Shown here one piece after another: positions 5,504 to 25,277 of a DNA stretch of 64,000 bases. A model generated the notes under the pieces. The model searched no databases. It saw only the letters and a program-made list of their open reading frames with translations, and was not told the origin of the DNA. Position 1 is the stretch's first letter; each line of letters begins with the position of its first letter. The DNA is from Tubulanus polymorphus (lineage: Eukaryota > Animalia > Nemertea), in the NCBI RefSeq assembly GCF_964204645.1, contig NC_134035.1, positions 7,720,451 to 7,784,450 of the forward strand. Direction: 5' to 3'. The position numbers and the translations under genes are program-made.

Positions 5504-5939
5504 AACAAAACGTATAAATCTAACCGTTTTGATATTACCTTCTCGATAGGATCGCCACCTCAGCGAGGCATCCACTTTTTATGTCTCTTTTAACACAGTT
5601 TCAATTGCTCAACTGATAAAACCAGGTACAATTATCCATTCGCTCCATCGAAAGATGTAGAAACAAACGCCTTTCCCTTCGCTCAAGGATCGGCGTTGAA
5701 TAAGGCGGAGGAAACTATGAGAACAGCTACTTAGCAACACAATCTGTGACGTCACATTACCAGAAAACATCCAATCTTCTATCTAACAAAGTATCGATTT
5801 GGGAATATATCTGCGACAACAAAATTTTGACGGCTTCGTTCAACTAATGGCGAAAACAAACAAGCAAATAAACAAACAAATAAACGGCTGTTTGCGAGTG
5901 CTTTTAATTTTTGAAATAAATCGAGCAAAATTTGAAAAA

Positions 5940-6058
5940 AGTCTGCAGCACCCGGTATTCCCAGGCGGTCACCCATCCAAGTACTAACCGGGCCCGACGT
6001 TGCTTAACTTCGGTGATCGGACGAGAACCGGTGCTTTCAACGTGGTATGGCCGTAGAC
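5940..6058 (-). rRNA. 5S: 5S rRNA
   Basis: Array copy. Confidence 0.95.
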
Positions 6059-6496
6059 AACAAAACGTATGAATCTAACCGTTTTGATATTACCTTCTCG
6101 ATAGGATCGCCACCTCAGCGAGGCATCCACTTTTTATGTCTCTTTTAACACAGTTTCAATTGCTCAACTGATAAAACCAGGTACAATTATCCATTCGCTC
6201 CATCGAAAGATGTAGAAACAAACGCCTTTCCCTTCGCTCAAGGATCGGCGTTGAATAAGGCGGAGGAAACTATGAGAACAGCTACTTAGCAACACAATCT
6301 GTGACGTCACATTACCAGAAAACATCCAATCTTCTATCTCTAACAAAGTATCGATTTAGGAATATATCTGCGACAACAAAATTTTGACAGCTTCGTTCAA
6401 CTAATGGCGAAAACAAACTAGCAAATAAACAAACAAATAAACGGCTGTTTGCGAGTGCTTTTAATTTTTGAAATAAATCGAGCAAAATTTGAAAAA

Positions 6497-6615
6497 AGTC
6501 TACAGCACCCGGTATTCCCAGGCGGTCACCCATCCAAGTACTAACCGGGCCCGACGCTGCTTAACTTCGGTGATCGGACGAGTACCGGTGCTTTCAACGT
6601 GGTATGGCCGTAGAC
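6497..6615 (-). rRNA. 5S: 5S rRNA
   Basis: Array copy. Confidence 0.95.
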
Positions 6616-7053
6616 AACAAAACGTATAAATCTAACCGTTTCGATATTACCTTCTCGATAGGATCGCCACCTCAGCGAGGCATCCACTTTTTATGTCTCT
6701 TTTAACACAGTTTCAATTGCTCAACTGATAAAACCAGGTACAATTATCCATTCGCTCCATCGAAAGATGTAGAAACAAACGCCTTTCCCTTCGCTCAAGG
6801 ATCGGCGTTGAATAAGGCGGAGGAAACTATGAGAACAGCTACTTAGCAACACAATCTGTGACGTCACATTACCAGAAAACATCCAATCTTCTATCTCTAA
6901 CAAAGTATCGATTTGGGAATATATCTGCGACAACAAAATTTTGACAGCTTCGTTCAACTAATGGCGAAAACAAACGAGCAAATAAACAAACAAATAAACG
7001 GCTGTTTGCGAGTGCTTTTAATTTTTGAAATAAATCGAGCAAAATTTGAAAAA

Positions 7054-7172
7054 AGTCTACAGCACCCGGTATTCCCAGGCGGTCACCCATCCAAGTACTA
7101 ACCGGGCCCGACGGTGCTTAACTTCGGTGATCGGACGAGAACCGGTGCTTTCAACGTGGTATGGCCGTAGAC
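7054..7172 (-). rRNA. 5S: 5S rRNA
   Basis: Array copy. Confidence 0.95.
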
Positions 7173-7609
7173 AACAAAACGTATAAATATAACCGTTTTG
7201 ATATTACCTACTCGATAGGATCTCCACCTCAGCGAGGCATCCACTTTTTATGTCTCTTTTAACACAGTTTCAATTGCTCAACTGATAAAACCAGGTACAA
7301 TTATCCATTCGCTCCATCGAAAGATGTAGAAACAAACGCCTTTCCCTTCGCTCAAGGATCGGCGTTGAATAGGCGGAGGAAACTATGAGAACAGCTACTT
7401 AGCAACACAATCTGTGACTACACATTACCAGAAAACAACCAATCTTCTATCTCTAACAAAGTATCGATTTGGGGATATATCTGCGACAACAAAATTTTGA
7501 CAGCTTCGTTCAACTAATGGCGAAAACAAACAAGCAAATAAACAAACAAATAAACGGCTGTTTGCGAGTGCTTTTAATTTTTGAAATAAATCGAGCAAAA
7601 TTTGAAAAA

Positions 7610-7728
7610 AGTCTACAGCACCCGGTATTCCCAGGCGGTCACCCATCCAAGTACTAACCGGGCCCGACGTTGTTTAACTTCGGTGATCGGACGAGAACCG
7701 GTGCTTTCAACGTGGTATGGCCGTAGAC
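7610..7728 (-). rRNA. 5S: 5S rRNA
   Basis: Array copy. Confidence 0.95.
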
Positions 7729-12734: not shown

Positions 12735-13170
12735 AACAAAACGTATCAATCTAACCGTTTTGATATTACCTTCTCGATAGGATCGCCACCTCAGCGAGGC
12801 GTCCACTTTTTATGTCTCTTTTAACAGAGTTTCAATTGCTCAACTGATAAAACCAGGTACAATTATCCATTCGCTCCATCGAAAGATGTAGAAACAAACG
12901 CCTTTCCCTTCGCTCAAGGATCGGCGTTGAATAAGGCGGAGGAAACTATGAGAACAGCTACTTAGCAACACAATCTGTGACGTCACATTACTAGAAAACA
13001 TCCAATCTTCTATCTAACAAAGTATCGATTTGGGAATATATCTGCGACAACAAAATTTTGACAGCTTCGTTCAACTAATGGCGAAAACAAACAAGCAAAT
13101 AAACAAACAAATAAACGGCTGTTTGCGAGTGCTTTTAATTTTTGAAATAAATCGAGCAAAATTTGAAAAA

Positions 13171-13204
13171 AGTCTACAGCACCCGGTATTCCCAGGCGGT
13201 CACC
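13171..13204 (-). pseudogene. 5S: 3' fragment (nt 86-119) of the transposon-interrupted 5S gene
   Basis: Exact 5S match ending at the left junction. Confidence 0.95.
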
Positions 13205-13240
13205 TGGCGCTCCTAGCGGGCGCGCGTGAGGCGGTGTTTT

Positions 13241-13308
13241 ATTTCAGGAAATGAATTGTGGAAACAGCCAATCAAATCCACGGATATCCACAATTCATTT
13301 CCTGAAAT
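13241..13308. repeat. Perfect 22-bp inverted repeat with 24-nt loop near the element left end
   Basis: ATTTCAGGAAATGAATTGTGGA (13241-13262) / TCCACAATTCATTTCCTGAAAT (13287-13308). Confidence 0.95.
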
Positions 13309-13483
13309 TTCCTGAAATTGACCAATCGCTGTGCTTGTTAGCGATGACGTAATTTCCGGATATACCGTTGAAGAGCGCCATATTTGATTTTCCGATCGTA
13401 AACACACAGCGCAGTTACAGTCACAGAAAGCAGACTAATTCGTTCCAGATCATCTGATTAAATTACCCGATTATCACGTAAGT
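13265..13483 (+). promoter_or_regulatory. Putative Pol II promoter and non-coding first exon of the transposase
   Basis: CCAAT at 13268 and 13322, CRE-like TGACGTAA 13345-13352; donor GTAAGT at 13478 would pair with the acceptor ending 14475. Confidence 0.4.
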
Positions 13484-14476
13484 GTATGAATTCAGTACTT
13501 CCAACATCCGAGGTTTCATACCCGATTAAATCTTTTATCGCAAATGCTTGCTTATGCCAATTTTTTGGTGAAAAACTTCTTACTTTTCACTCGCAAATTC
13601 AATCAACTTCAATTTATTACAATTATTTTGGGTTAAGCCTATCATTCATCATCAAAATGTGAATCGTGAACACTAGAAGAGCGAGAGAGTAGAAGTTTTC
13701 ACTAGAAGGCATTACGGATTGTTTCATTTTTCCATTCCGTGATATTTTGTCAATTCTGTTACTGTTAGGCCTTATAAGTCCTTTTTTTATTTAGGCCTAC
13801 TCCCGTGTGTGGAATAGGTCGATTATCAGCCCAAAAATGAAACAGGTCCTTCCTAGCGAATCATTCTGTATTTCCAGCGTCGTAACTGCGTATTAGCCTA
13901 TGGGTCCGTAAATTCCTTGATGCGCTATGAATCAAGAAATCTAGAATCCAGGCCAGGGGTAAAATCTAAAATTCTGACTAAGCATTCCCCTTAAAATTCC
14001 TATCATCCCCCCTTGAATTATATAAATTAAAAATCATCAATTGTCTAAATCTTTTTTCAACTCAATTTGTGAATGCGACCCTCCCTGTACTTATGCATAT
14101 AGGCCATTGACCAGAAATCTCTCCCTACAACTTGCAATTAACTTGAAACAATAGTCACAATGATACCACAGCCACTGGCTGTCTCTATTATTGTTTTGTG
14201 TATTCTGTGAAAGGTCAATATAAGTGGGAGCTTATTATATCCCTTTATTATGACAGGCATTGTGCTCACAAAGACTTGGTTATCAAAACATAGGCCAATG
14301 TGGTTATTAATTCAAATGTTTTGATTTCCAATGACAATAAAGCCCTAGCTTGCTAATTTCTCAATTACCTAGTTGATGTAATTACTTTCATATGTAAGAT
14401 GAAAATTGAAATTATGTTAAACTGGACCCTTAAAATTTGTTCGATGTTTAATTGATGTTTCTCTTTTTGTTCTAGC

Positions 14477-14918
14477 ATGGAACCAATTTTCCGTCGCCTA
14501 AAAAATCGTACGATCGACACGTTTGACACCGATGCCGCCAAGAACCATAAAAGCACTAGTGGTTGGGCAACTCAGGACCCTGCGGAGAAAGTTTTGGCGG
14601 ATGCGATGCGCCGGGTTGCCCAGGCCGGAGGAGATCAGTCAAACCCGAAACATTTGTTAGGCCAGTATACACTTCAGTTTGGTAAGTTTAGGGGTAAGAA
14701 ATTTCAGTGGATACTCTCTAATGCTCTTGGCTTTGCAGTAAACCTCTACGTCATGGATGAATGTGAGAAGCAAAAACCACATCCCAAGATAGACCACAAG
14801 AACCATGCCGACAACAAGAAAGCCCTCTTCAAATACATGAGGCTGTTTCCCGAAGCCAAGGAAGCGATTGAGAGGAGGAGAGCTGTCCATCAAGAGCGTG
14901 TGAAACCTACGATTTCAA
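14477..14918 (+). CDS. Transposase coding exon 1 (N-terminus, QFGKFRGKKFQW motif)
   Basis: ATG one base after acceptor TTCTAG (ends 14475); donor GTAAGT at 14919, phase 1. Confidence 0.75.
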
Positions 14919-15009
14919 GTAAGTCAAGTTTTCAATATACAGTCGGATCGTTTGATATCAGAGTTGTTTTGTGCTTGTTCTATTTATGAAAAATTTTTTA
15001 TTTTCACAG

Positions 15010-15213
15010 AAGCTCGTCAGACTCAACCAGCCGGGAGCCAACCAACTGTGACAACTAGGAGGAGTCGCCCATCTGCTACAACCAGGAGCCAACCAACTGC
15101 GACAACTAGGAGTCAACCCAGCTCATCGACTACAACTGAGAACGTCTCGATGCCGTCTGATGATGATGATGATCTACTGACAAGTGTCATCACTCTTGAA
15201 GCGCAGTTATCTG
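15010..15213 (+). CDS. Transposase coding exon 2 (S/T/P-rich linker with SQPTxTTR repeats)
   Basis: Acceptor TTTTCACAG ends 15009, donor GTAATA at 15214; phases match neighbours. Confidence 0.65.
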
Positions 15214-15975
15214 GTAATATATCTTAATTCTAATGATATTTTTATTGTAGATTCAATTGATACATCATGAGATATACATCCTACAAATTTTTGCAGTGTT
15301 TTGGACGGATTGTAAAGATTCCATCCAAGTTAACCGCAGTCCTCCCTTTCGGCCATCCACTCCTAGTAATTGCAGCCATATTGTAACATTTAATCATTTA
15401 TTTCTCAAAATTTACAGTTTATATCTGGATAAGTTGGTAAGATTTATGTTGTGTAGGGTTCCTAGAATATGCTTTTATAAATGTGTAGCTATTGTAAAAT
15501 GGTATTTTCTTCCTATCTATTTTAATGTACCTATTTCTTTATAAAAACTGGGTAATCATGCTTTATATGTATGCAGTACTGTCTCTTTATTACATAATCC
15601 ATCTTTATGATATTGGTATATAGTTGCTATAATGGACATTATGAATATGATAACACACACACTCTCTCTGTCTCTCTCTGTCACTAGCAAAATGCAACAC
15701 GTCTATCCTCTCCTGCTTAATAACTTATTTTTTACAGTGATTTCCCATTTGTAATCTCATTTTTCCAGTGAGTCACTCTTATTCCTCATTTATAGGTATT
15801 TAGATGGTAACATTACAGTGATGCGGTTTTCTTTTGTTCCTTTTGTCTATCATTCTGTTTTTGTTTAATATTTCAGTGAAATTGTACCGGACTTTATGAT
15901 GATTTAGAATTCTTATGCTATAAACCTCAATCATGAATGAGATAGTAAATTCATATTCTATTTTTCTCTATCTAG

Positions 15976-16450
15976 CCTCTCAGACAACACGGACTACAGC
16001 GACTACGACTACACCGACCACGACTACTACTACTACTACTACTACTACTACACCGACTACGACAACCGCGATCGATAACGACCACCGCTTGCTTTTACCA
16101 GAATGGCGTAAAGTTCTGTCCGAATATGAACAGAAGTGGATCACCAAAACCCTCTTCATGAAAACCAAGAGTGGGAGGCTGGAGATGGATTTTAGCCGCG
16201 TCAATCAGCTTTGGTGGAATCCTCCACAGCCATTGGTAGTTGCAGGCCAGGTACCCAAAGTCGAGCAGTACTTTGCCCACCGCCTGTTCTTGTGGATGCC
16301 TCGACGACTGTGGCAAGTCCAACTTAGATGTCCAGTCGCAACGTGCCAAGGGAGAGAGTTGACATCAGCAGGATTATACAAGCGGTTGCGGCAGGTACTC
16401 GATATCGATTCGCACTACTTCATCGCAACAGAAAGTTTGGAATGTCAGAA
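15976..16450 (+). CDS. Transposase coding exon 3 (poly-Thr, LWWNPPQ, LFLWMP, CPVATC)
   Basis: Acceptor TCTAG ends 15975, donor GTAAGA at 16451; splicing to exon 4 creates CQKC. Confidence 0.8.
16023..16049 (+). repeat. (ACT)9 microsatellite encoding poly-Thr
   Basis: Read directly; in frame in exon 3. Confidence 0.9.
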
Positions 16451-16536
16451 GTAAGATTGTGTCCATGTTAAAGTGTGACCTGCTGATTACAGGTTGTGAT
16501 TTTATGAATGATTTTTTTTTTGTCTCGTATTTATAG

Positions 16537-17758
16537 ATGCAAGGCGAAATATGTTGGAACGACTGCTGAGATCATCTCGCAACTAGCCGTCGGTTACCAG
16601 CTCCAGTTCCCGTGTATACTGACACAGAAGTACGCTTGCGATTATAAGGTTGTGCGACTGCTTTGCAGAGAGGTCTGGGTAACAGCACTACTCAGATCCA
16701 GAAGAAGCTGCGGGAGCAACATGGCGAAGCTTACCTCGAGCGTGTCTCACAGTACCTCACTGAGTGTGAAGGCTTGTCCAAGGCTATCCGTTCTGGTCTC
16801 GTAAAACCGCACGAATTCGCTGACCCACCACAGCCTTTGAGCATCCCGCAGTTTCGGTGGCTCATGCTTGTGTACGTCAGTGATGTGTTGTCGAGACTGG
16901 ACGAGGTCAGGGCAGCCATTACGTCTCAGTTTGGTCGAATTCTCAAAATTGACTCAACTAAGAAAATAGTCAAGAAGTTGACTGGTCATGCCAAGGGGAC
17001 CGCGATGTGGTGCACCAATGTAGGGAACGAGCATGGTCAGGTCCTTATGTCTGTCCTTACTACTGGCGAAGGCTATGGTCTCAGTCAAATGATTGATGGC
17101 CTAATCAAAAGGTATGATACTGCTGGTGTGCCTGCCCCTGAGGTGATATACACTGATCGGGATTGTTGTGGCCACAGCGTACTGAAAACAAACCTAGCCC
17201 CTTGGACAGATATCATCATCAGATTGGACGTTTGGCATTTCATGCGGCGGTTCTCTACAGGGTGTACTACAGATTCACATCGGCTGTATGCGAGTTTTAT
17301 GAGAGGCCTTAGCCGGTGTATCTTTGAGTGGGACCCTGAGGATCTTGACCGTCTAAAGAGAGCGAAGCGTGAGGAGCTAGCCCTGAAAGCTATCACTGGT
17401 CTTAGTGACCGCCAGTTAGTTGAGCGAATTTCTTCGGCCGAGTTGGCACGGCACTGTAAACGTACCACACGTGGAACAGATGCTACTGTCCGCCTACTGG
17501 GTCAGCTCGTCGCTTCCTTCTCGGGTGACAAAGGGAAAGACTCCTTGGGTGTTTCGCTCATAAACACTGAGCGCATGGCGGAGATTTATAAGTCTCAAGC
17601 TAAGCATGTTGCCTGCCTGCAGGATCCACCTGGCGTTCAGTTGTACACACAAACCGGAACGATCAAGAAAGGACAGACGACACTGCCTATCTACAGATGT
17701 GCCCGTGGTTCGACGTCATTGAAATCATTCCACCTTCATCTAAACAGATTCATTCCAG
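16537..17758 (+). CDS. Transposase coding exon 4, catalytic DDE core, with a 1-bp frameshift near 16664
   Basis: D of IDSTKK 16951-16953, D of YTDRD 17155-17157, DVWH 17227-17238, RGSTSLKSFH with K at 17722-17724; donor GTAAGA at 17759. Confidence 0.85.
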
Positions 17759-17847
17759 GTAAGATTAAAAATCACTTTCACCATATGAAATCTTCTCTTG
17801 TAGCTTTCTCTAACTAATTAGCTGATTTCATGATTTCATATTTATAG

Positions 17848-18261
17848 GTACTGTGGCTGGCGATGTCAGTTTCCAGATGTACCTGGTTGATGGTTTAGCG
17901 CGTTGGAATGAGGATCGAGCTATTGCAGCTGTAACTCAAGACAAACAGATTTCCTGCTACAGTGGAAAGCTACGCCATCATATCAATGAGCTAAGTCAAA
18001 CTGTCCTTGGAAAGAAGCTTTTACCAGCATTCCAAGGGCCATTGCGTTACACCGGTGAACCTATAGGTATTGATTATCTTTACAGCCAAACAGGAGAGGC
18101 ACCAGTGTCTAACACTAGGTTGCGTCTAGCCGAGGAGGAACGCTTGCTGGACTCTGCTTCTGACCAGGAATTTAGTGACAGCCCTGTTGATGAGCCGCTG
18201 CCTCTGTATGATGTGGAAGACTTGACATTAGCTGTGCCTACTGATGAGGATAACGACTTCT
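17848..18261 (+). CDS. Transposase coding exon 5 (FQMYLVDGLARWNEDR...YTGEPIGIDYLYSQ)
   Basis: Acceptor TTTATAG ends 17847, donor GTAAGT at 18262; in frame with exon 4. Confidence 0.8.
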
Positions 18262-18435
18262 GTAAGTCACAATGTTTTTAGAAAATTGTTTGAATAATAA
18301 TTCTATTTCAGTTCTGTTAAGTTCATTCCTGTAATTGATTCCTCTGATTACTGTTGACTTTGTGACATGCCCTCAGCTGAATCCATTACATTTTGACTAA
18401 GGGATAATGGTTTTGTGTATTATTTTTCATTGTAG

Positions 18436-18653
18436 TTTCTCCGACTGTGACACCAACTGCACCAGTTCTTCCCGTTGACACCATGTCCGTTGATACTCCG
18501 TTGCCGATGGAAACTGAGGAGGTCACTGAGCTTGAACCCGATGATGCTGTGCCAGAATTTCGCTTACCGACCCTTGATACTCCAGAGCTGCAGCCCTTTG
18601 AACTGTCGAATGTTCCATCTATTGAATCTCCCCTGGGGGATTCGGATGAGCAT
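18436..18653 (+). CDS. Transposase coding exon 6 (acidic, Pro-rich linker)
   Basis: Acceptor TGTAG ends 18435, donor GTAAGT at 18654; phases 1 and 0 match. Confidence 0.7.
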
Positions 18654-18738
18654 GTAAGTTTTCTATAAAAAAAAGGTTTTCGTTCGAGTTGTGTTGATGT
18701 TGTTAAAGAATTTAATTTCAAATATCTATTTTATTCAG

Positions 18739-18995
18739 GATTCTTTGGGACCAGACGGTATTGCTGGATTTGGAAAGGTTGATGCTTTGGCTGAGAAACT
18801 GGTAAACTTGGATGAGAATTCACTGGCTCTTACAAACAACGAAGCTCGTGAAATCATTGATTTGTGGCAGAACTTGGACGACTACGACAAGAGGTCCATC
18901 ATCAAACCACGCCATCAACCAACTCTCAGTCAAGGTAGATTTCGAGCAACAAAGAAACGTTCTGGCTTGGCTCCTGGAGTTGAAAGTTCACGGAG
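18739..18995 (+). CDS. Transposase coding exon 7 (GPDGIAGF...LWQNLDDYDK...PGVES)
   Basis: Acceptor TTCAG ends 18738, donor GTAAGC at 18996. Confidence 0.75.
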
Positions 18996-19171
18996 GTAAG
19001 CCTAATCTACTGTATTTTTCATTTCAAAATAAATGTACTAATAAGTCGAAATTGCCAATTGAATATTAAATGGCAATATAATCTTTGAGTTCAATTTGAC
19101 CCTACAATAGAGGTTACATGGGTTAACCTAAATAAACTTTATGTTAATCAAGTATTTATGATAATTTTTAG

Positions 19172-19420
19172 AGCTTTTCTGGGACCAAATTCGGCACCTG
19201 CTCAGTGGCCGACTTGTAATCACTACGTCGAGACAACCATGGTGAAGCTCTGTGCGAAGTATCCAGCATCAAAAACGGTTGCAGGAGTGCGAGTTACGCG
19301 ATGGATCCTTATCTCCCGCGCCTACAAGCACATAAGAGACGTCGTCGTCGGAAATCCTGTGGTTATGCATCACTCGAACATTCAGCTTCCAGAGTTGAAT
19401 ATGACGACTATAACCCAATG
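19172..19420 (+). CDS. Transposase coding exon 8 (PAQWP...LCAKYP...TRW)
   Basis: Acceptor TTTTTAG ends 19171, donor GTAAGT at 19421; phase 2 at both ends. Confidence 0.75.
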
Positions 19421-19520
19421 GTAAGTTAACCTTTTATGCCCCACCTCTTAACCATCTAAATTATTATTAATCATATTGAGATTATGTTCATAAAATGGTC
19501 TATTTCTTTTTTCATTTTAG

Positions 19521-20271
19521 GTGGAATCGACGTTCTAAGAAGCAAGAGGAAATGGTTCTCAGGCAGGGAATTCAAATCCCGAATCCTCCTTTGGCAAGCC
19601 AGCAACCATTGCTTATTGCTTGTCAAAAGCCTTCTGTGCTGCCGAGAGGATCCTCTGATGATCGCCATACCTTTGTACTTCCTACGAACACTGCTGGAAT
19701 GGCGAAAATAAAGCGGCGAAGAACAACTCCTTCCGCAACTGCGACTCTCGCATCAGTAGCTGCGGCAGCAACTAGTACGCGGCCTGCACCGCAGATTCCT
19801 CAGAATGTTATTGATTTGTCAGGCGCTCATCAGTCCCTCAATACAGATACTACCGCAGATACTACTCGATTGATGGGTTGCTCACAAATCATGACAGGAC
19901 CTGTTGCGTCTAAGGAGCAGAAAGCTGAAAGTTTGCAGCCAGCCACTACCCAGCTGATAATTGTTGCACCGCCAAAAGACCAGGCCGTTCTGCCTAAGGT
20001 CATCCATTCTGAATCCATGGGAAATATACAGGTTGTTCCTTACACAACCCATATGCACAGATTACAAAGGCAGCAGCAATTAGAAGCTGGGGTGAGTCGC
20101 AGAAAGTACACTCCACGGACAAAGGTTACTTGTCCTAAGTGTAAAAAGGAGAGATCGAAGCCCTCGCATCAGCAGTTTTTCGGAAATTGGTACTGTAGTG
20201 AAACGTCAACGGTGACTCTGGAAGAGTGGAGACAGCAAATGCAGGCCAGGGGATACAAGAAGAAGAAGTGA
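19521..20271 (+). CDS. Transposase last coding exon with C-terminal CCHC zinc finger (Cx2Cx8Hx8C) and basic tail
   Basis: Acceptor TTTTAG ends 19520; CPKC-KKERSKPS-H-QQFFGNWY-C at 20131-20196; stop TGA 20269-20271. Confidence 0.75.
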
Positions 20272-20384
20272 AGCTCGATTAGTGACAGGATTCCAGGACT
20301 AGAGATCAACTGTGCGTATAGCGTAGATATGGGTATGTGTGTCTGGTAAAATCTTTCAGAAATTACTCGATTTTGACATTTTCA

Positions 20385-20544
20385 TGCAGCTATCAACCTG
20401 CTGTCTGTACAACCCCTCAGTTTGATGTCCGACAGACATTCGATCACCTCACCATTTGGGAAAAATCGTGGTTTGTCCAGACTTCGCTATTCAAAAAGGT
20501 GATCGTCTGAAGGGCTAGGCACAGACAACAGATTGACAGCTGCA
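20385..20544 (-). other. 160-bp fold-back (structured RNA candidate or small MITE) downstream of the transposase stop
   Basis: Arms 20385-20420 / 20507-20544 plus inner 9-bp stem 20441-20449 / 20497-20505. Confidence 0.6.
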
Positions 20545-21327
20545 CAAATCTAACTTTGTGACATTTTATGTGAAAATTTGTGAAAAATCTAAGGACCATG
20601 TGAAAGAAATATAAAATTGTATCCAGAATTCTCCTTAGATTGTAACAAGTTTTTGAAAAACCCTTGATGAATTTCAGGCTTGCTTCATCACACTGGACTG
20701 ATTGTTTATAATTTATTCAGTTTGATGGTTTTGTTTATAATTTATTTAGTTTGATGGTTTATTATTTTATAATTGTTTATTAATAATTGGCAGTTTTAAT
20801 TTTGAGTTTTATTTTTTAAATTTGTATCTTTTATTTGTTTTATACTAGAATAGGGATTCCAGAAATATTTGGTTGATTTAATGGTAGTTCAACTTTAGAA
20901 AATTCACTATAAAATTTGAAATTTGAAGTTTGATTCAGTGGTAGTTTGACTTAAGAAATTTCACTCTAACATTTAGAATTTGTAGTTTAGTAGTAGAACT
21001 TATTTTAAACTAGAAGTCCCTCAAAATTGTAATTTTTCAATTCAGTGTATATGTCCAAAATTGTAATTTTTCGATTGAGTGTGTATGTGCATTGTGCTTA
21101 GAAGCCTGCCTGTTATGCAAATGACAAACTATAAAATTTTTAATGCTGCCTACTATGTCAAAAACATGGTAGAAGGTTCCAAGCCCTTAAAAAGCAGAGG
21201 AGAGATTTTATAGAAAAAGGTATCATTTATTTAGTTGTCAGGTCATTTTTCACTGATAAAATGAGCTGAGAATATGAAGATTGGCAGGATGGAAATAAAC
21301 TAATTAAAACTCATTAATCTACTTCCA

Positions 21328-21337
21328 GATTCGAACC
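21328..21337 (-). promoter_or_regulatory. Pol III B-box-like motif GGTTCGAATC
   Basis: Reverse complement of GATTCGAACC; matches the tRNA B-box consensus; function unproven. Confidence 0.35.
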
Positions 21338-21368
21338 ACTGACCCCTCAATAGTACGGGATTCCCTAC

Positions 21369-21467
21369 GCCGAGTGAATGGAAGTTTCAAGTACTGTAGT
21401 GGTTTGCATCTAGCAGTACCCCTCCGGCATTCAGGAAACGCAACCGAGCCGAGTGAGTAGAAGTTTC
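21369..21467 (+). repeat. 20-bp subterminal direct repeat at the element right end
   Basis: GCCGAGTGAATGGAAGTTTC (21369-21388) vs GCCGAGTGAGTAGAAGTTTC (21448-21467), 18/20 identical. Confidence 0.85.
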
Positions 21468-21552
21468 CATCCAAGTACTAACCGGGCCCGACGTTGCTTA
21501 ACTTCGGTGATCGGACGAGAACCGGTGCTTTCAACGTGGTATGGCCGTAGAC
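21468..21552 (-). pseudogene. 5S: 5' fragment (nt 1-85) of the transposon-interrupted 5S gene
   Basis: Exact 5S match starting at the right junction. Confidence 0.95.
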
Positions 21553-21988
21553 AACAAAACGTATGAATCTAACCGTTTTGATATTACCTTCTCGATAGGA
21601 TCGCCACCTCAGCGAGGCATCCACTTTTTATGTCTCTTTTAACACAGTTTCAATTGCTCAACTGATAAAACCAGGTACAATTATCCATTCGCTCCATCGA
21701 AAGATGTAGAAACAAACGCCTTTCCCTTCGCTCAAGGATCGGCGTTGATTAAGGCGGAGGAAACTATGAGAACAGCTACTTAGCAACACAATCTGTGACG
21801 TCACATTACCAGAAAACATCCAATCTTCTATCTAACAAAGTATCGATTTGGGAATATATCTGCGACAACAAAATTTTGACAGCTTCGTTCAACTAATGGC
21901 GAAAACAAACTAGCAAATAAACAAACAAATAAACGGCTGTTTGCGAGTGCTTTTAATTTTTGAAATAAATCGAGCAAAATTTGAAAAA

Positions 21989-23774: not shown

Positions 23775-23909
23775 AACAAAACGTATCAATCTAACCGTTT
23801 TGATATTACCTTCTCGATAGGATCGCCACCTCAGCGCGGCATCCACTTTTTATGTCTCTTTTAACACAGTTTCAATTGCTCAACTGATAAAACCAGGTAC
23901 CAATTATCC

Positions 23910-24928
23910 TTCCTGTGATTATATAATGACCTATATTTGAACGTCGAACTGTTATATTGCATTGAATATCATTAGAAGACGTATTGTAATAGTAAAGGAT
24001 GTATGATTATATCAGAAACGGCAGGCATAAATAGAAATGATAAGTAAATCGGATTATTCGGTTAAATGGCGGATGTATACACGATTTGGAAGTCTGATAT
24101 AAAAGTCAGACCCTAACGTTGGCATGCTGGTGGAATGACGAAGCTATCTACGATGTGTGTAGGGCCGGCGTGAATTTCATCAGCGGCTACAAGCGGTAAA
24201 TATGAAAATGTGTAAACATATAATTTCAATATTCAAACGTTTTAGAAAATATGTTTGATATTAGGAGTATGCAGGTTTCGTGAGATTAGCAATTTATAAT
24301 AGCATAGCTGTCATATACGGCTCCGCGTCCTCTGATGGCATGTGTATTAGGTGACAATTCAATTCCATTCTTTATTGTTCCTTATTACATCGAAATTCCG
24401 GGATAAAATTCCCAATTCAATAAATACAAATTTTAAAATAAATTAATACAACATACATGACACACGGGTAATTCATACAGAACAACATAAGCATGTTATT
24501 TTAAATGACAATGTCTACTTCAACCCACCCAGACTCAAGACTCTAGGATATCGAGTGACAGCCAAACCCGTGGCCCGGGGACCGGGCCGGCTGGCTAGGC
24601 CACACGATATGCTCGAAGTCATGATGAAGCAGACATCAGAAGAGCTCTTTCTTCAACCATGGAGGCAATGAAGTTGCAGACCAGCTTAGAGGCATAAGTA
24701 AATGAAGTCGGTCGCAAGTTCGCGATCAATTATTGACGAATTTTCAATAAAAAAATTTAAACCACTACTAGAGTCGAAGACCTGTATCATCTACCCAATC
24801 GCAAAATCTCATCATTCCCCAAATTTCTTAAAACTTCGATTTCAAATTTGCAATTCCACATTAGCTTAGCCCAGAAATTCTATATTTTTTCGCAGGCGTC
24901 AAATAATTTTCTGAAATTAATTTTCTTG
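23910..24928. other. ~1,019-bp non-repeat, AT-rich insert in the spacer; origin unknown
   Basis: Spacer stops at 23909 and resumes at 24929, about 60 bp earlier in unit register; no ORF of 60 aa or more. Confidence 0.85.
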
Positions 24929-25277
24929 TTATGTCTCTTTTAACACAGTTTCAATTGCTCAACTGATAAAACCAGGTACAATTATCCATTCGCTCCATCG
25001 AAAGATGTAGAAACAAACGCCTTTCCCTTCGCTCAAGGATCGGCGTTGAATAAGGCGGAGGAAACTATGAGAACAGCTACTTAGCAACACAATCTGTGAC
25101 GTCACATTACCAGAAAACATCCAATCTTCTATCTAACAAAGTATCGATTTGGGAATATATCTGCGACAACAAAATTTTGACAGCTTCGTTCAACTAATGG
25201 CGAAAACAAACAAGCAAATAAACGGCTGTTTGCGAGTGCTTTTAATTTTCGAAATAAATCGAGCAAAATTTGAAAAA

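Follow-up and report, generated by a model that had tools for sequence, protein, structure and literature searches.

A Dada DNA transposon inside a 5S rRNA gene of Tubulanus polymorphus: a probable off-target copy of a recently active family that targets the tRNA A box

A stretch of 64,000 nucleotides (nt) of Tubulanus polymorphus DNA (contig NC_134035.1, positions 7,720,451 to 7,784,450; the window) contains an array of 5S ribosomal RNA (rRNA) genes, one of which is split by a transposon of the Dada superfamily. This element is probably an off-target copy of a recently active Dada family that targets the A box of transfer RNA (tRNA) genes, and not a member of a 5S-specific lineage. The initial annotation of this DNA had proposed a Dada lineage retargeted to box C of the 5S gene and had looked to recurrent insertions at 5S nt 85/86 for support. 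The genome (268 Mb in 77 contigs) contains at least nine other copies of the family, and none lies in a 5S gene; rather, copies are found in tRNA-Met, tRNA-Lys, tRNA-like sequence, and unique DNA (95.5-99.4% identity), unrelated sites of the sort that the annotation had itself named as evidence against its proposal. At the proposed site, 1 of approximately 396 5S genes is interrupted, the one in the window, and the retargeting proposal is not upheld.

Other copies of the family and their target sites

At least ten 5' ends and at least seven 3' ends of the family are present in the genome. Among four other full copies, pairwise differences amount to 0-1 nt; one is in tRNA-Met, two form a head-to-tail pair in tRNA-Lys, and one is in unique DNA. 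On the plus strand of contig C8, a tRNA-Met(CAT) gene is interrupted between nt 7 and 8, giving the order GCCTCGT, TGGCGC, element, TAGCGC, AGTTGG. On the minus strand of C8, the pair interrupts a tRNA-Lys(CTT) gene in the order GCCCGGC, TAGCTC, copy A, TAGCTC, copy B, TGGCGC, AGTCGG. ARAGORN identifies the joined flanks as tRNA-Met(CAT) and tRNA-Lys(CTT), respectively, and right after the element the Rfam tRNA match begins at model positions 7 and 8. The copy on C6 is positioned in single-copy DNA between two TGGCGC hexamers, and an older copy on C10 adjoins a tRNA-like sequence at TGGCCG-AGTGG. The family thus occupies multicopy small RNA genes (tRNA-Met, tRNA-Lys, the tRNA-like flank, and 5S). 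(Rfam searches of the loci around paralogous transposase matches yielded no 5S fragments.)

The hexamers on the two sides of a copy are TGGCGC/TGGCGC on C6, TAGCTC/TAGCTC for the first tRNA-Lys copy, and TGGCGC/TAGCGC in tRNA-Met. Thus, at the level of the family a 6-bp target site duplication (TSD) is present, while in the window copy the right hexamer alone is native. TAGCTC occurs in 10 of 10 intact tRNA-Lys-CTT genes; at the right end of the tandem pair it has therefore been replaced by TGGCGC, which is not native there. Among the tRNA-Met genes, TAGCGC is present in three and TGGCGC in six. The six TGGCGC genes (tRNA-Met-CAT) are clustered at C8:15209453-15373981, on the contig that also holds three of the young copies, and the three with TAGCGC at nt 8-13 are located elsewhere; the cluster could represent a natural G9 isodecoder or the footprints of Dada visits.

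The pair in tRNA-Lys (C8:13362219-13378730; loci L060 and L066) consists of two identical full-length copies in one tRNA-Lys-CTT gene, with a spacer of exactly 6 bp, TAGCTC. It looks like either a second insertion into a regenerated target or a tandem dimer of the IS256 type. At C9:12171300-12180863 (L003, L004, L062), a pair of partial copies stands face to face, 5' ends outward and 3' ends absent; the left junctions of this rearranged inverted structure read TGGCGC-TAGC and TGGCGC-TGGCGC before the element.

The split 5S gene and the ends of the element

The 5S array is on the minus strand of the window and gives 96 Rfam matches with a spacing of ~556 bp, the weakest of which (62 bits, 21433-21552) is the split copy. 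As had been described, one of the 96 copies is split and its halves rejoin exactly: 13170-13204 joined to 21468-21552 is identical to an intact neighbouring 5S gene at 119 of 119 compared positions, and removal of the insert leaves the array in phase. The breakpoint is uncertain by 1 nt (C at 13204 versus C at 21467). Genome-wide, 395 intact 5S junction sequences are present, and the 5S genes make up ~1.8e-4 of the genome (~396 genes x 119 nt in 268 Mb).

The same array contains another insertion, in a spacer: a dispersed repeat of ~1.0 kb at 23913-24924, with spacer sequence directly duplicated over 55-68 bp on its two sides (23846-23900 and 24925-24979). Hundreds of copies of this repeat, at 95-99% identity, are present in the genome (728 first-look candidates), and it is not confined to 5S arrays. 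Its presence indicates that the array tolerates stray insertions.

The element had been assigned a length of 8,263 bp at 13205-21467. These figures hold for the insert; the alignment of copies gives a shorter element proper (Table 1), and the C at 21467 is junction sequence outside the part that the copies share. In other copies, TGGCGC or TAGCTC directly precedes TAGCGGGCG, and TGGCGC is found within 10 nt of the left junction at 8 of 10 junctions. In the window, the 5S target hexamer CCATCC is followed by AAGT on the right, and the left side reads C-TGGCGC-TCC in place of the expected second CCATCC. The "no TSD" reading of the junction gives way to a better description: one copy of the target hexamer has been exchanged for an ancestral hexamer, here TGGCGC, as is known from other Dada elements. 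Readings of the "no TSD" junction as the work of a Helitron, a Crypton, or a non-LTR (long terminal repeat) element were rejected, since both the protein and the ends are of the Dada type.

No terminal inverted repeats (TIRs) are present, as no inverted pair links the element termini; instead, TTCNNGAA is found at nt 30-37 from both termini, giving equidistant sub-terminal inverted repeats. Inside the element, at 21362-21387 (region 21362-21395), there is a direct repeat of the 3' terminal motif (GCCGAGTGAATGGAAGTTT versus the terminal GCCGAGTGAGTAGAAGTTT). This repeat is followed by CAAGTACT and then by the A-box-like GTAGTGGTT.

The transposase

The motifs IDSTKK, YTDRDCC, DVWH, and RGSTSLESFH, noted at the outset on the strand opposite the 5S genes, are indeed present there, and seven of the element's coding blocks are also conserved in its Dada paralogues in this genome. 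Three consecutive plus-strand open reading frame (ORF) pieces of the insert match Pfam DUF6729, as had been anticipated, and Pfam detects no reverse transcriptase domain in the ORFs of the insert, again in agreement with the first description. (Protein searches were run exon by exon, on the unjoined exons.) A splice donor GT at 16451 and an acceptor AG ending at 16536 bring together the four cysteines of the CCCC finger (C-x4-C-x32-C-x2-C), which spans the 16450/16537 splice junction.

In four intact sister copies the core frame is open over 485 amino acids (aa) and contains D197, D266, D290-x-x-H293, and E455; the DDE/DxxH motifs are conserved across an alignment of 39 sequences. The core spacings are 137 (C-to-D), 69 (D-to-D), and 189 (D-to-E), compared with 135, 68, and 176 in Dada-U6_DR, and the finger spacings are x4/x32/x2 and x2/x8/x8 here versus x4/x34/x2 and x2/x9/x8 in Dada-U6_DR. 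A search of the PDB by sequence with the core exon gave no match. The AlphaFold model of the core, built from the 39-sequence alignment, has a mean pLDDT (predicted local distance difference test) of 82.6. Its best structural match is the transposase of ISCth4, an IS256-family member (E 4e-5; a weak match, with a template modelling score of about 0.3), followed by IstA, Mu (MuA), retroviral integrases, and Hermes. As modelled, the core fold is closest to the IS256-family DDE transposases, in agreement with the published distant relationship.

DUF6729 core homologues comprise 2,504 cluster representatives, and a literature search on DUF6729 found no paper. Among foreign homologues, one (L070) lies between U6 genes (6306-6402 and 18669-18766) and another (L071) is inside a tRNA gene cluster (5575-7657 and 16617-16688); both are typical Dada contexts.

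Relation to published Dada lineages and other systems

Published Dada elements, at 4.7-11 kb in length, specify a transposase of ~1,400 aa that is spread over several exons and combines a CCCC finger, the DDE and DxxH motifs, and a CCHC finger; they lack TIRs, have equidistant sub-terminal inverted repeats, and generate TSDs of 6-7 bp (Kojima and Jurka 2013, PMC3706591). The family described here has the DDE and DxxH motifs, both fingers, the sub-terminal repeats, the hexamer TSDs, and insertions in small RNA genes, and the original assignment to Dada is borne out. Dada-tN/tR (TGGCGC), Dada-tK/tY (TAGCTC), and Dada-tS (TGGCCG) insert at tRNA nt 8-13, tRNA-targeting Dada elements use several tRNA types, Met and Lys included, and one or both copies of the TSD are often replaced by an ancestral hexamer (PMC8869645).

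The family resembles Dada-tN/tR/tK/tY of ray-finned fish and Dada-tI/tY of Perkinsus marinus (PMC3706591, PMC8869645) in inserting at tRNA nt 8-13, within the A box. As in Dada-tN/tR/tK/tY, the hexamers TGGCGC and TAGCTC are followed by AG or AA and more than one tRNA type is used; in fact, the hexamers TGGCGC and TAGCTC are the canonical TSDs of Dada-tN/tR/tK (PMC8869645 section 4.2, Table S1). Hexamer replacement, the lack of TIRs, a multi-exon transposase, and the motif spacing are likewise those of the tRNA lineages. Unlike the named lineages, however, this one family uses TGGCGC, TAGCGC, and TAGCTC alike, has one copy in 5S, forms a head-to-tail dimer with a 6-bp spacer, and contains a twister motif (see below).

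A Dada element that targets 5S genes has already been published from goldfish, herring, and other fish (Dada-5S; target ATTCCCAGGCGGTC, canonical TSD ATTCCCA; PMC8869645, Kojima 2022), at another site; the window family belongs to a known kind that targets tRNA genes. The window element shares with fish Dada-5S its location in the 3' third of a 5S gene and its orientation, which is antisense to the 5S RNA. The Dada-5S TSD, however, corresponds to 5S nt 96-102, whereas the window hexamer corresponds to nt 81-86, 9-10 bp away, and ATTCCCA is intact in the window at 13188-13194. Dada-5S clusters with Dada-U1 and comprises families that are defined by insertion into 5S, whereas here 1 of about 10 copies is in 5S. 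With 1 of at least 9-10 copies in 5S and an insertion outside ATTCCCA, the family does not belong with the Dada-5S lineage.

Two further systems are of note. Mutsu and R2-type non-LTR retrotransposons likewise use multicopy rRNA genes as a safe harbour, but they do so with a reverse transcriptase and target-primed reverse transcription, neither of which is present in the window element. The IS256 family (ISCth4, PDB 6XGX/6XG8; PMC7780238) differs in being bacterial, with TIRs, an 8-bp TSD, and no target specificity. IS256 and ISCth4 form end-to-end junctions with a spacer of ~6 bp derived from flanking DNA (PMC7780238), a spacer that resembles both the hexamer carried by the Dada family and the 6-bp spacer of its tandem dimer.

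Off-target insertion and its alternatives

The window copy differs from the four young full copies by 34 substitutions and 5 insertions or deletions (indels). Eighteen of these substitutions are common to older partial copies (on C19, C9, and C10) and are thus ancestral states; the other 16 are private. A private 1-nt deletion at ~16665 breaks the core exon, which is open in the four sisters, and the window copy consequently cannot encode the full protein; the remaining indels are intronic, non-coding, or in frame. The lineage of the 5S copy separated ahead of the most recent transposition burst, and the copy is now decaying.

Reads and contigs from four public runs (X21-X24) were used to ask what other samples carry. 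(The runs probably represent other individuals, and rare variants are lost from Logan contigs.) Logan contigs end at 21466/21467, and in X22 and X23 the 3' end continues into the flank of the plus-strand C10 copy. The young-clade allele at 20320 is carried by 0 of 18 reads in X24, and it is present in X22; the read depth in X24, for which raw reads from another study were used, amounts to roughly two 3' ends. The family thus varies from sample to sample, and the 5S insertion has not reached fixation. The differences between samples in copy number and alleles (20200-21466) suggest ongoing activity and insertion polymorphism.

We infer that the window copy arose by an off-target event, and several observations weigh against this. 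The left junction, C-TGGCGC-TCC, fits no simple model. The chance of a random stray insertion into 5S is low, ~1e-3 with some five non-tRNA insertions. Next to the hexamer, C|AAGT is common to the 5S site and the unique-DNA site on C6, and the CAAGTACT that follows the internal 3'-end repeat is the same 8-mer as that after the hexamer in the 5S flank. Finally, in the four public runs (20200-21750) no Logan contig or read bridges 21466/21467, and the window-private alleles at 20342, 20926, and 21324 are absent (0/12, 0/11, and 0/14 raw reads in X24).

The low chance of a random hit, the shared C|AAGT, and the AAGTACT that follows the internal pseudo-end and equals the 5S flank could all be accommodated if the family had a genuine second specificity for 5S, or if retargeting were under way, with the transposase reading approximately 5S nt 70-86. 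Fish Dada-5S demonstrates that such retargeting occurs, and in the same antisense orientation. Nevertheless, this explanation is unlikely: 1 of at least 9-10 copies is in 5S, 1 of ~396 5S genes is occupied, and 0 of the 4 young copies is in a 5S gene. Moreover, CCATCC agrees with TGGCGC at 2 of 6 positions, the irregular left junction is what a poor target would give, and the site is not the ATTCCCA of fish Dada-5S. Slightly less probable again is a preference for what RNA polymerase III (Pol III) genes have in common, such as TFIIIC/TFIIIB-bound or nucleosome-free chromatin, that would favour tRNA and 5S genes beyond their primary sequence. Five of the seven insertions with a known right flank are in Pol III-type sequence (tRNA-Met, tRNA-Lys twice, tRNA-like, and 5S), as this would predict; however, the A-box hexamer is hit with single-base precision, the tandem pair acquired its second copy when the upstream part of the tRNA was 8 kb away, beyond the resident copy, one copy is in unique non-tRNA DNA at TGGCGC, and published comparisons favour recognition of primary sequence (PMC8869645). 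Taken together, a real secondary affinity for 5S, whether through sequence (C|AAGT) or through Pol III chromatin, has a small share of the probability; it is disfavoured by the single occupied gene, by the lack of young 5S copies, and by the presence of an unrelated repeat in the array.

The missing bridging reads and the unseen private alleles also raise the question of a chimeric join, made during assembly, of a Dada copy into the 5S array. This is very unlikely given that both junctions are in one 5S unit, are exactly complementary, and leave the array in phase, and that the 16 private substitutions and the copy's own indels identify a distinct molecule instead of a misplaced sister. The origin of the runs and the loss of rare variants from Logan contigs, together with the variation of the 20320 allele by sample, also argue against it. 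An off-target insertion by a tRNA-targeting family thus remains the preferred explanation.

A model for integration

The normal target of the family would be the A-box hexamer at tRNA nt 8-13 (TGGCGC, TAGCGC, or TAGCTC) followed by A(A)GT, and the insertions carry a hexamer plus A(A)GT on their right side. The multi-exon DDE/DxxH transposase, with its CCCC and CCHC fingers, probably binds the sub-terminal TTCNNGAA sites, and we infer that it integrates the element at the 6-bp hexamer. The second copy of the tandem pair inserted beside an element and not beside a tRNA acceptor stem, which indicates that the upstream part of the tRNA is not needed for recognition. Comparisons among Dada elements favour recognition of primary sequence, and Kojima suggests binding downstream (PMC8869645), a suggestion with which the tandem pair agrees.

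As in published Dada elements, one flanking hexamer would become the carried TGGCGC rather than a copy of the target. In three informative insertions the native hexamer is on one side and TGGCGC is on the other (left in tRNA-Met and 5S, right in tRNA-Lys). One way in which this could arise is if the excised or copied element kept 6 nt of donor flank as 5' flaps, as it might when released from an end-to-end junction of the IS256 type. The flaps could then anneal to the 6-nt gaps of a target with a similar hexamer, and after replication each daughter would have the donor hexamer on one side only. The match of CCATCC to TGGCGC at 2 of 6 positions could explain the irregular left junction in 5S. 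By analogy with IS256, a copy-out/paste-in route for Dada may be envisaged; that one-sided hexamer replacement and the 6-bp-spaced dimer both reflect an IS256-like end-to-end junction carrying 6 bp of donor flank is speculative.

Within this scheme, the window copy would have landed off-target on the antisense strand of 5S, at CCATCC (5S nt 81-86) before AAGT. It could have persisted because one of ~400 5S genes is dispensable and, predating the latest burst, would subsequently have lost its reading frame.

A twister motif downstream of the transposase gene

A twister-P1-like self-cleaving ribozyme motif is located ~870 nt past the stop codon and ~90 nt before the only AATAAA/ATTAAA poly(A) signals (21294 and 21303), that is, in the region of the 3' untranslated region (UTR). 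The match to RF03160 is below the gathering cut-off of this model (53.6 versus 67.2 bits). A scan of the genome with RF03160 gave 11 matches, all in or adjoining Dada loci (61 of ~10,000 first-look candidates were scored). Seven of these belong to the window family. The remaining four fall in other Dada elements, with 39-59% aa identity to the query exon, and each follows the core exon at a distance of 2-4 kb on its strand; two of the four reach 67.2 bits, which equals the cut-off, and 60.8 bits. Of ten foreign Dada loci examined (L070-L080), one, L074, has a twister and none was found in the other nine, and the motif is accordingly not universal in Dada.

The core sequences UAA, GCC, GGUCCCAAGCCC, and GAGGG, stems P1, P2, and P4, and pseudoknot T1 are present, and all stems form; the consensus core and P1, P2, and P4 are the same as those of the Rfam RF03160 twisters. 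T1, the pairing of L4 with L1, has 3 Watson-Crick pairs. The window motif has two deviations, GGUUCC and GAGGA, which would keep a T1 pair as U-A, and L074 has the canonical C and G. In a comparison of the window and L074 motifs, both partners have changed in 4 stem pairs, and pairing holds in 98% of cells.

These sequence features leave about an even chance that a Dada clade carries a functional twister as a conserved 3' UTR module, in the sense orientation and upstream of the poly(A) signal, which would cut the transposase transcript. Twister T-variants occur in the non-LTR retrotransposons of Schistosoma mansoni (PMC8501958); these twisters, too, are inside a mobile element, but the window motif is in the 3' UTR region of a DNA transposon. 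No publication that connects the twister class with Dada elements came up in a literature search. When the fish Dada sequences that accompany PMC8869645 were searched for the L4 core of the twister, GCCGGTCCCAAGCCCGG and a GGTTCC variant turned up in a tRNA-SINE-like (short interspersed nuclear element) segment of one family; this was not counted as a ribozyme.

Table 1. Coordinates of the split 5S gene, the Dada element, and twister motifs (window positions unless a contig or locus is named)
Feature	Position	Strand	Basis or remarks
Split 5S gene, 3' part (5S nt 86-120)	13170..13204	-	Exact rejoining with 21468-21552; Rfam array context
Left junction sequence	13205..13213	+	TGGCGC (13205-13210), the hexamer carried by the family; TCC (13211-13213), filler unique to the window copy
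Dada element proper, 8,253 bp (TAGCGGGCGCGC...GAGTAGAAGTTT)	13214..21466	+	Ends and length equal in four other full copies: C6 (one), C8 (three)
Sub-terminal motif TTCAGGAA, nt 30-37 from 5' terminus	13243..13250	+	Inside 22-nt hairpin arms 13241-13262 / 13287-13308
First conserved coding block, 170-aa ORF	14477..14989	+	34% aa identity to paralogous Dada locus L041
Coding block: N-terminal half of DUF6729 and first three Cys of CCCC finger	15933..16450	+	Pfam E 2.5e-42, profile positions 1-114
Core exon: fourth Cys of finger, rest of DUF6729, D (IDSTKK), D (YTDRDCC), DVWH, E (LESFH)	16537..17817	+	Pfam, alignment; broken in window copy
Conserved coding block	17853..18281	+	41-93% aa identity to six paralogous loci
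Conserved coding block	18691..18999	+	47-51% aa identity to L041, L065, L040
Conserved coding block	19158..19424	+	28-45% aa identity to L041, L065, L047
Last coding block: C-terminal CCHC finger (C-x2-C-x8-H-x8-C) and stop codon	19495..20271	+	Sequence
Twister-P1-like self-cleaving ribozyme motif	21137..21205	+	RF03160, 53.6 bits, E 1.4e-11, full model; sense with transposase
Sub-terminal motif TTCAGGAA, equal to TTCCTGAA at nt 30-37 read inward from 3' terminus	21430..21437	+	Sequence
Native target hexamer CCATCC (complement of 5S nt 81-86)	21467..21472	+	Abuts element 3' end; geometry as GAAGTTT then TAGCGC, TAGCTC, or TGGCGC elsewhere
Split 5S gene, 5' part (nt 1-85)	21468..21552	-	Rejoining with 13170-13204; Rfam
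Twister in other Dada element	C11:4461775-4461840	-	RF03160 scan
Twister in other Dada element	C9:11298794-11298855	-	RF03160 scan
Twister in other Dada element	C11:4483121-4483183	+	RF03160 scan
Twister in other Dada element	C11:4470667-4470720	-	RF03160 scan
Twister in Dada of another organism	L074:21117-21232	+	Own model, 43.8 bits, E 6e-11; 1.4 kb downstream of Dada gene

Implications

As a new claim of 5S targeting the window element has little weight, since such elements are published and the family is not 5S-specific. Its value is as a very recently active Dada family, with an open 485-aa core exon in four copies, beyond the published cases in fish and Perkinsus; its use of the same target, tRNA nt 8-13, speaks for an ancient origin of this target. 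The junction patterns and the twister module are the features that merit further work. Both the replacement of a hexamer on one side only and the 6-bp-spaced head-to-tail dimer constrain models of Dada integration. The twister class has no confirmed biological function (PMC8501958). If the motif is a functional module, its cleavage would limit expression of the transposase or process the 3' end of the transcript, and it would be the first ribozyme module reported for the Dada superfamily and a concrete genomic role for eukaryotic twisters. If the ribozyme is active, its recurrence in Dada elements would link the twister class to the biology of DNA transposons.

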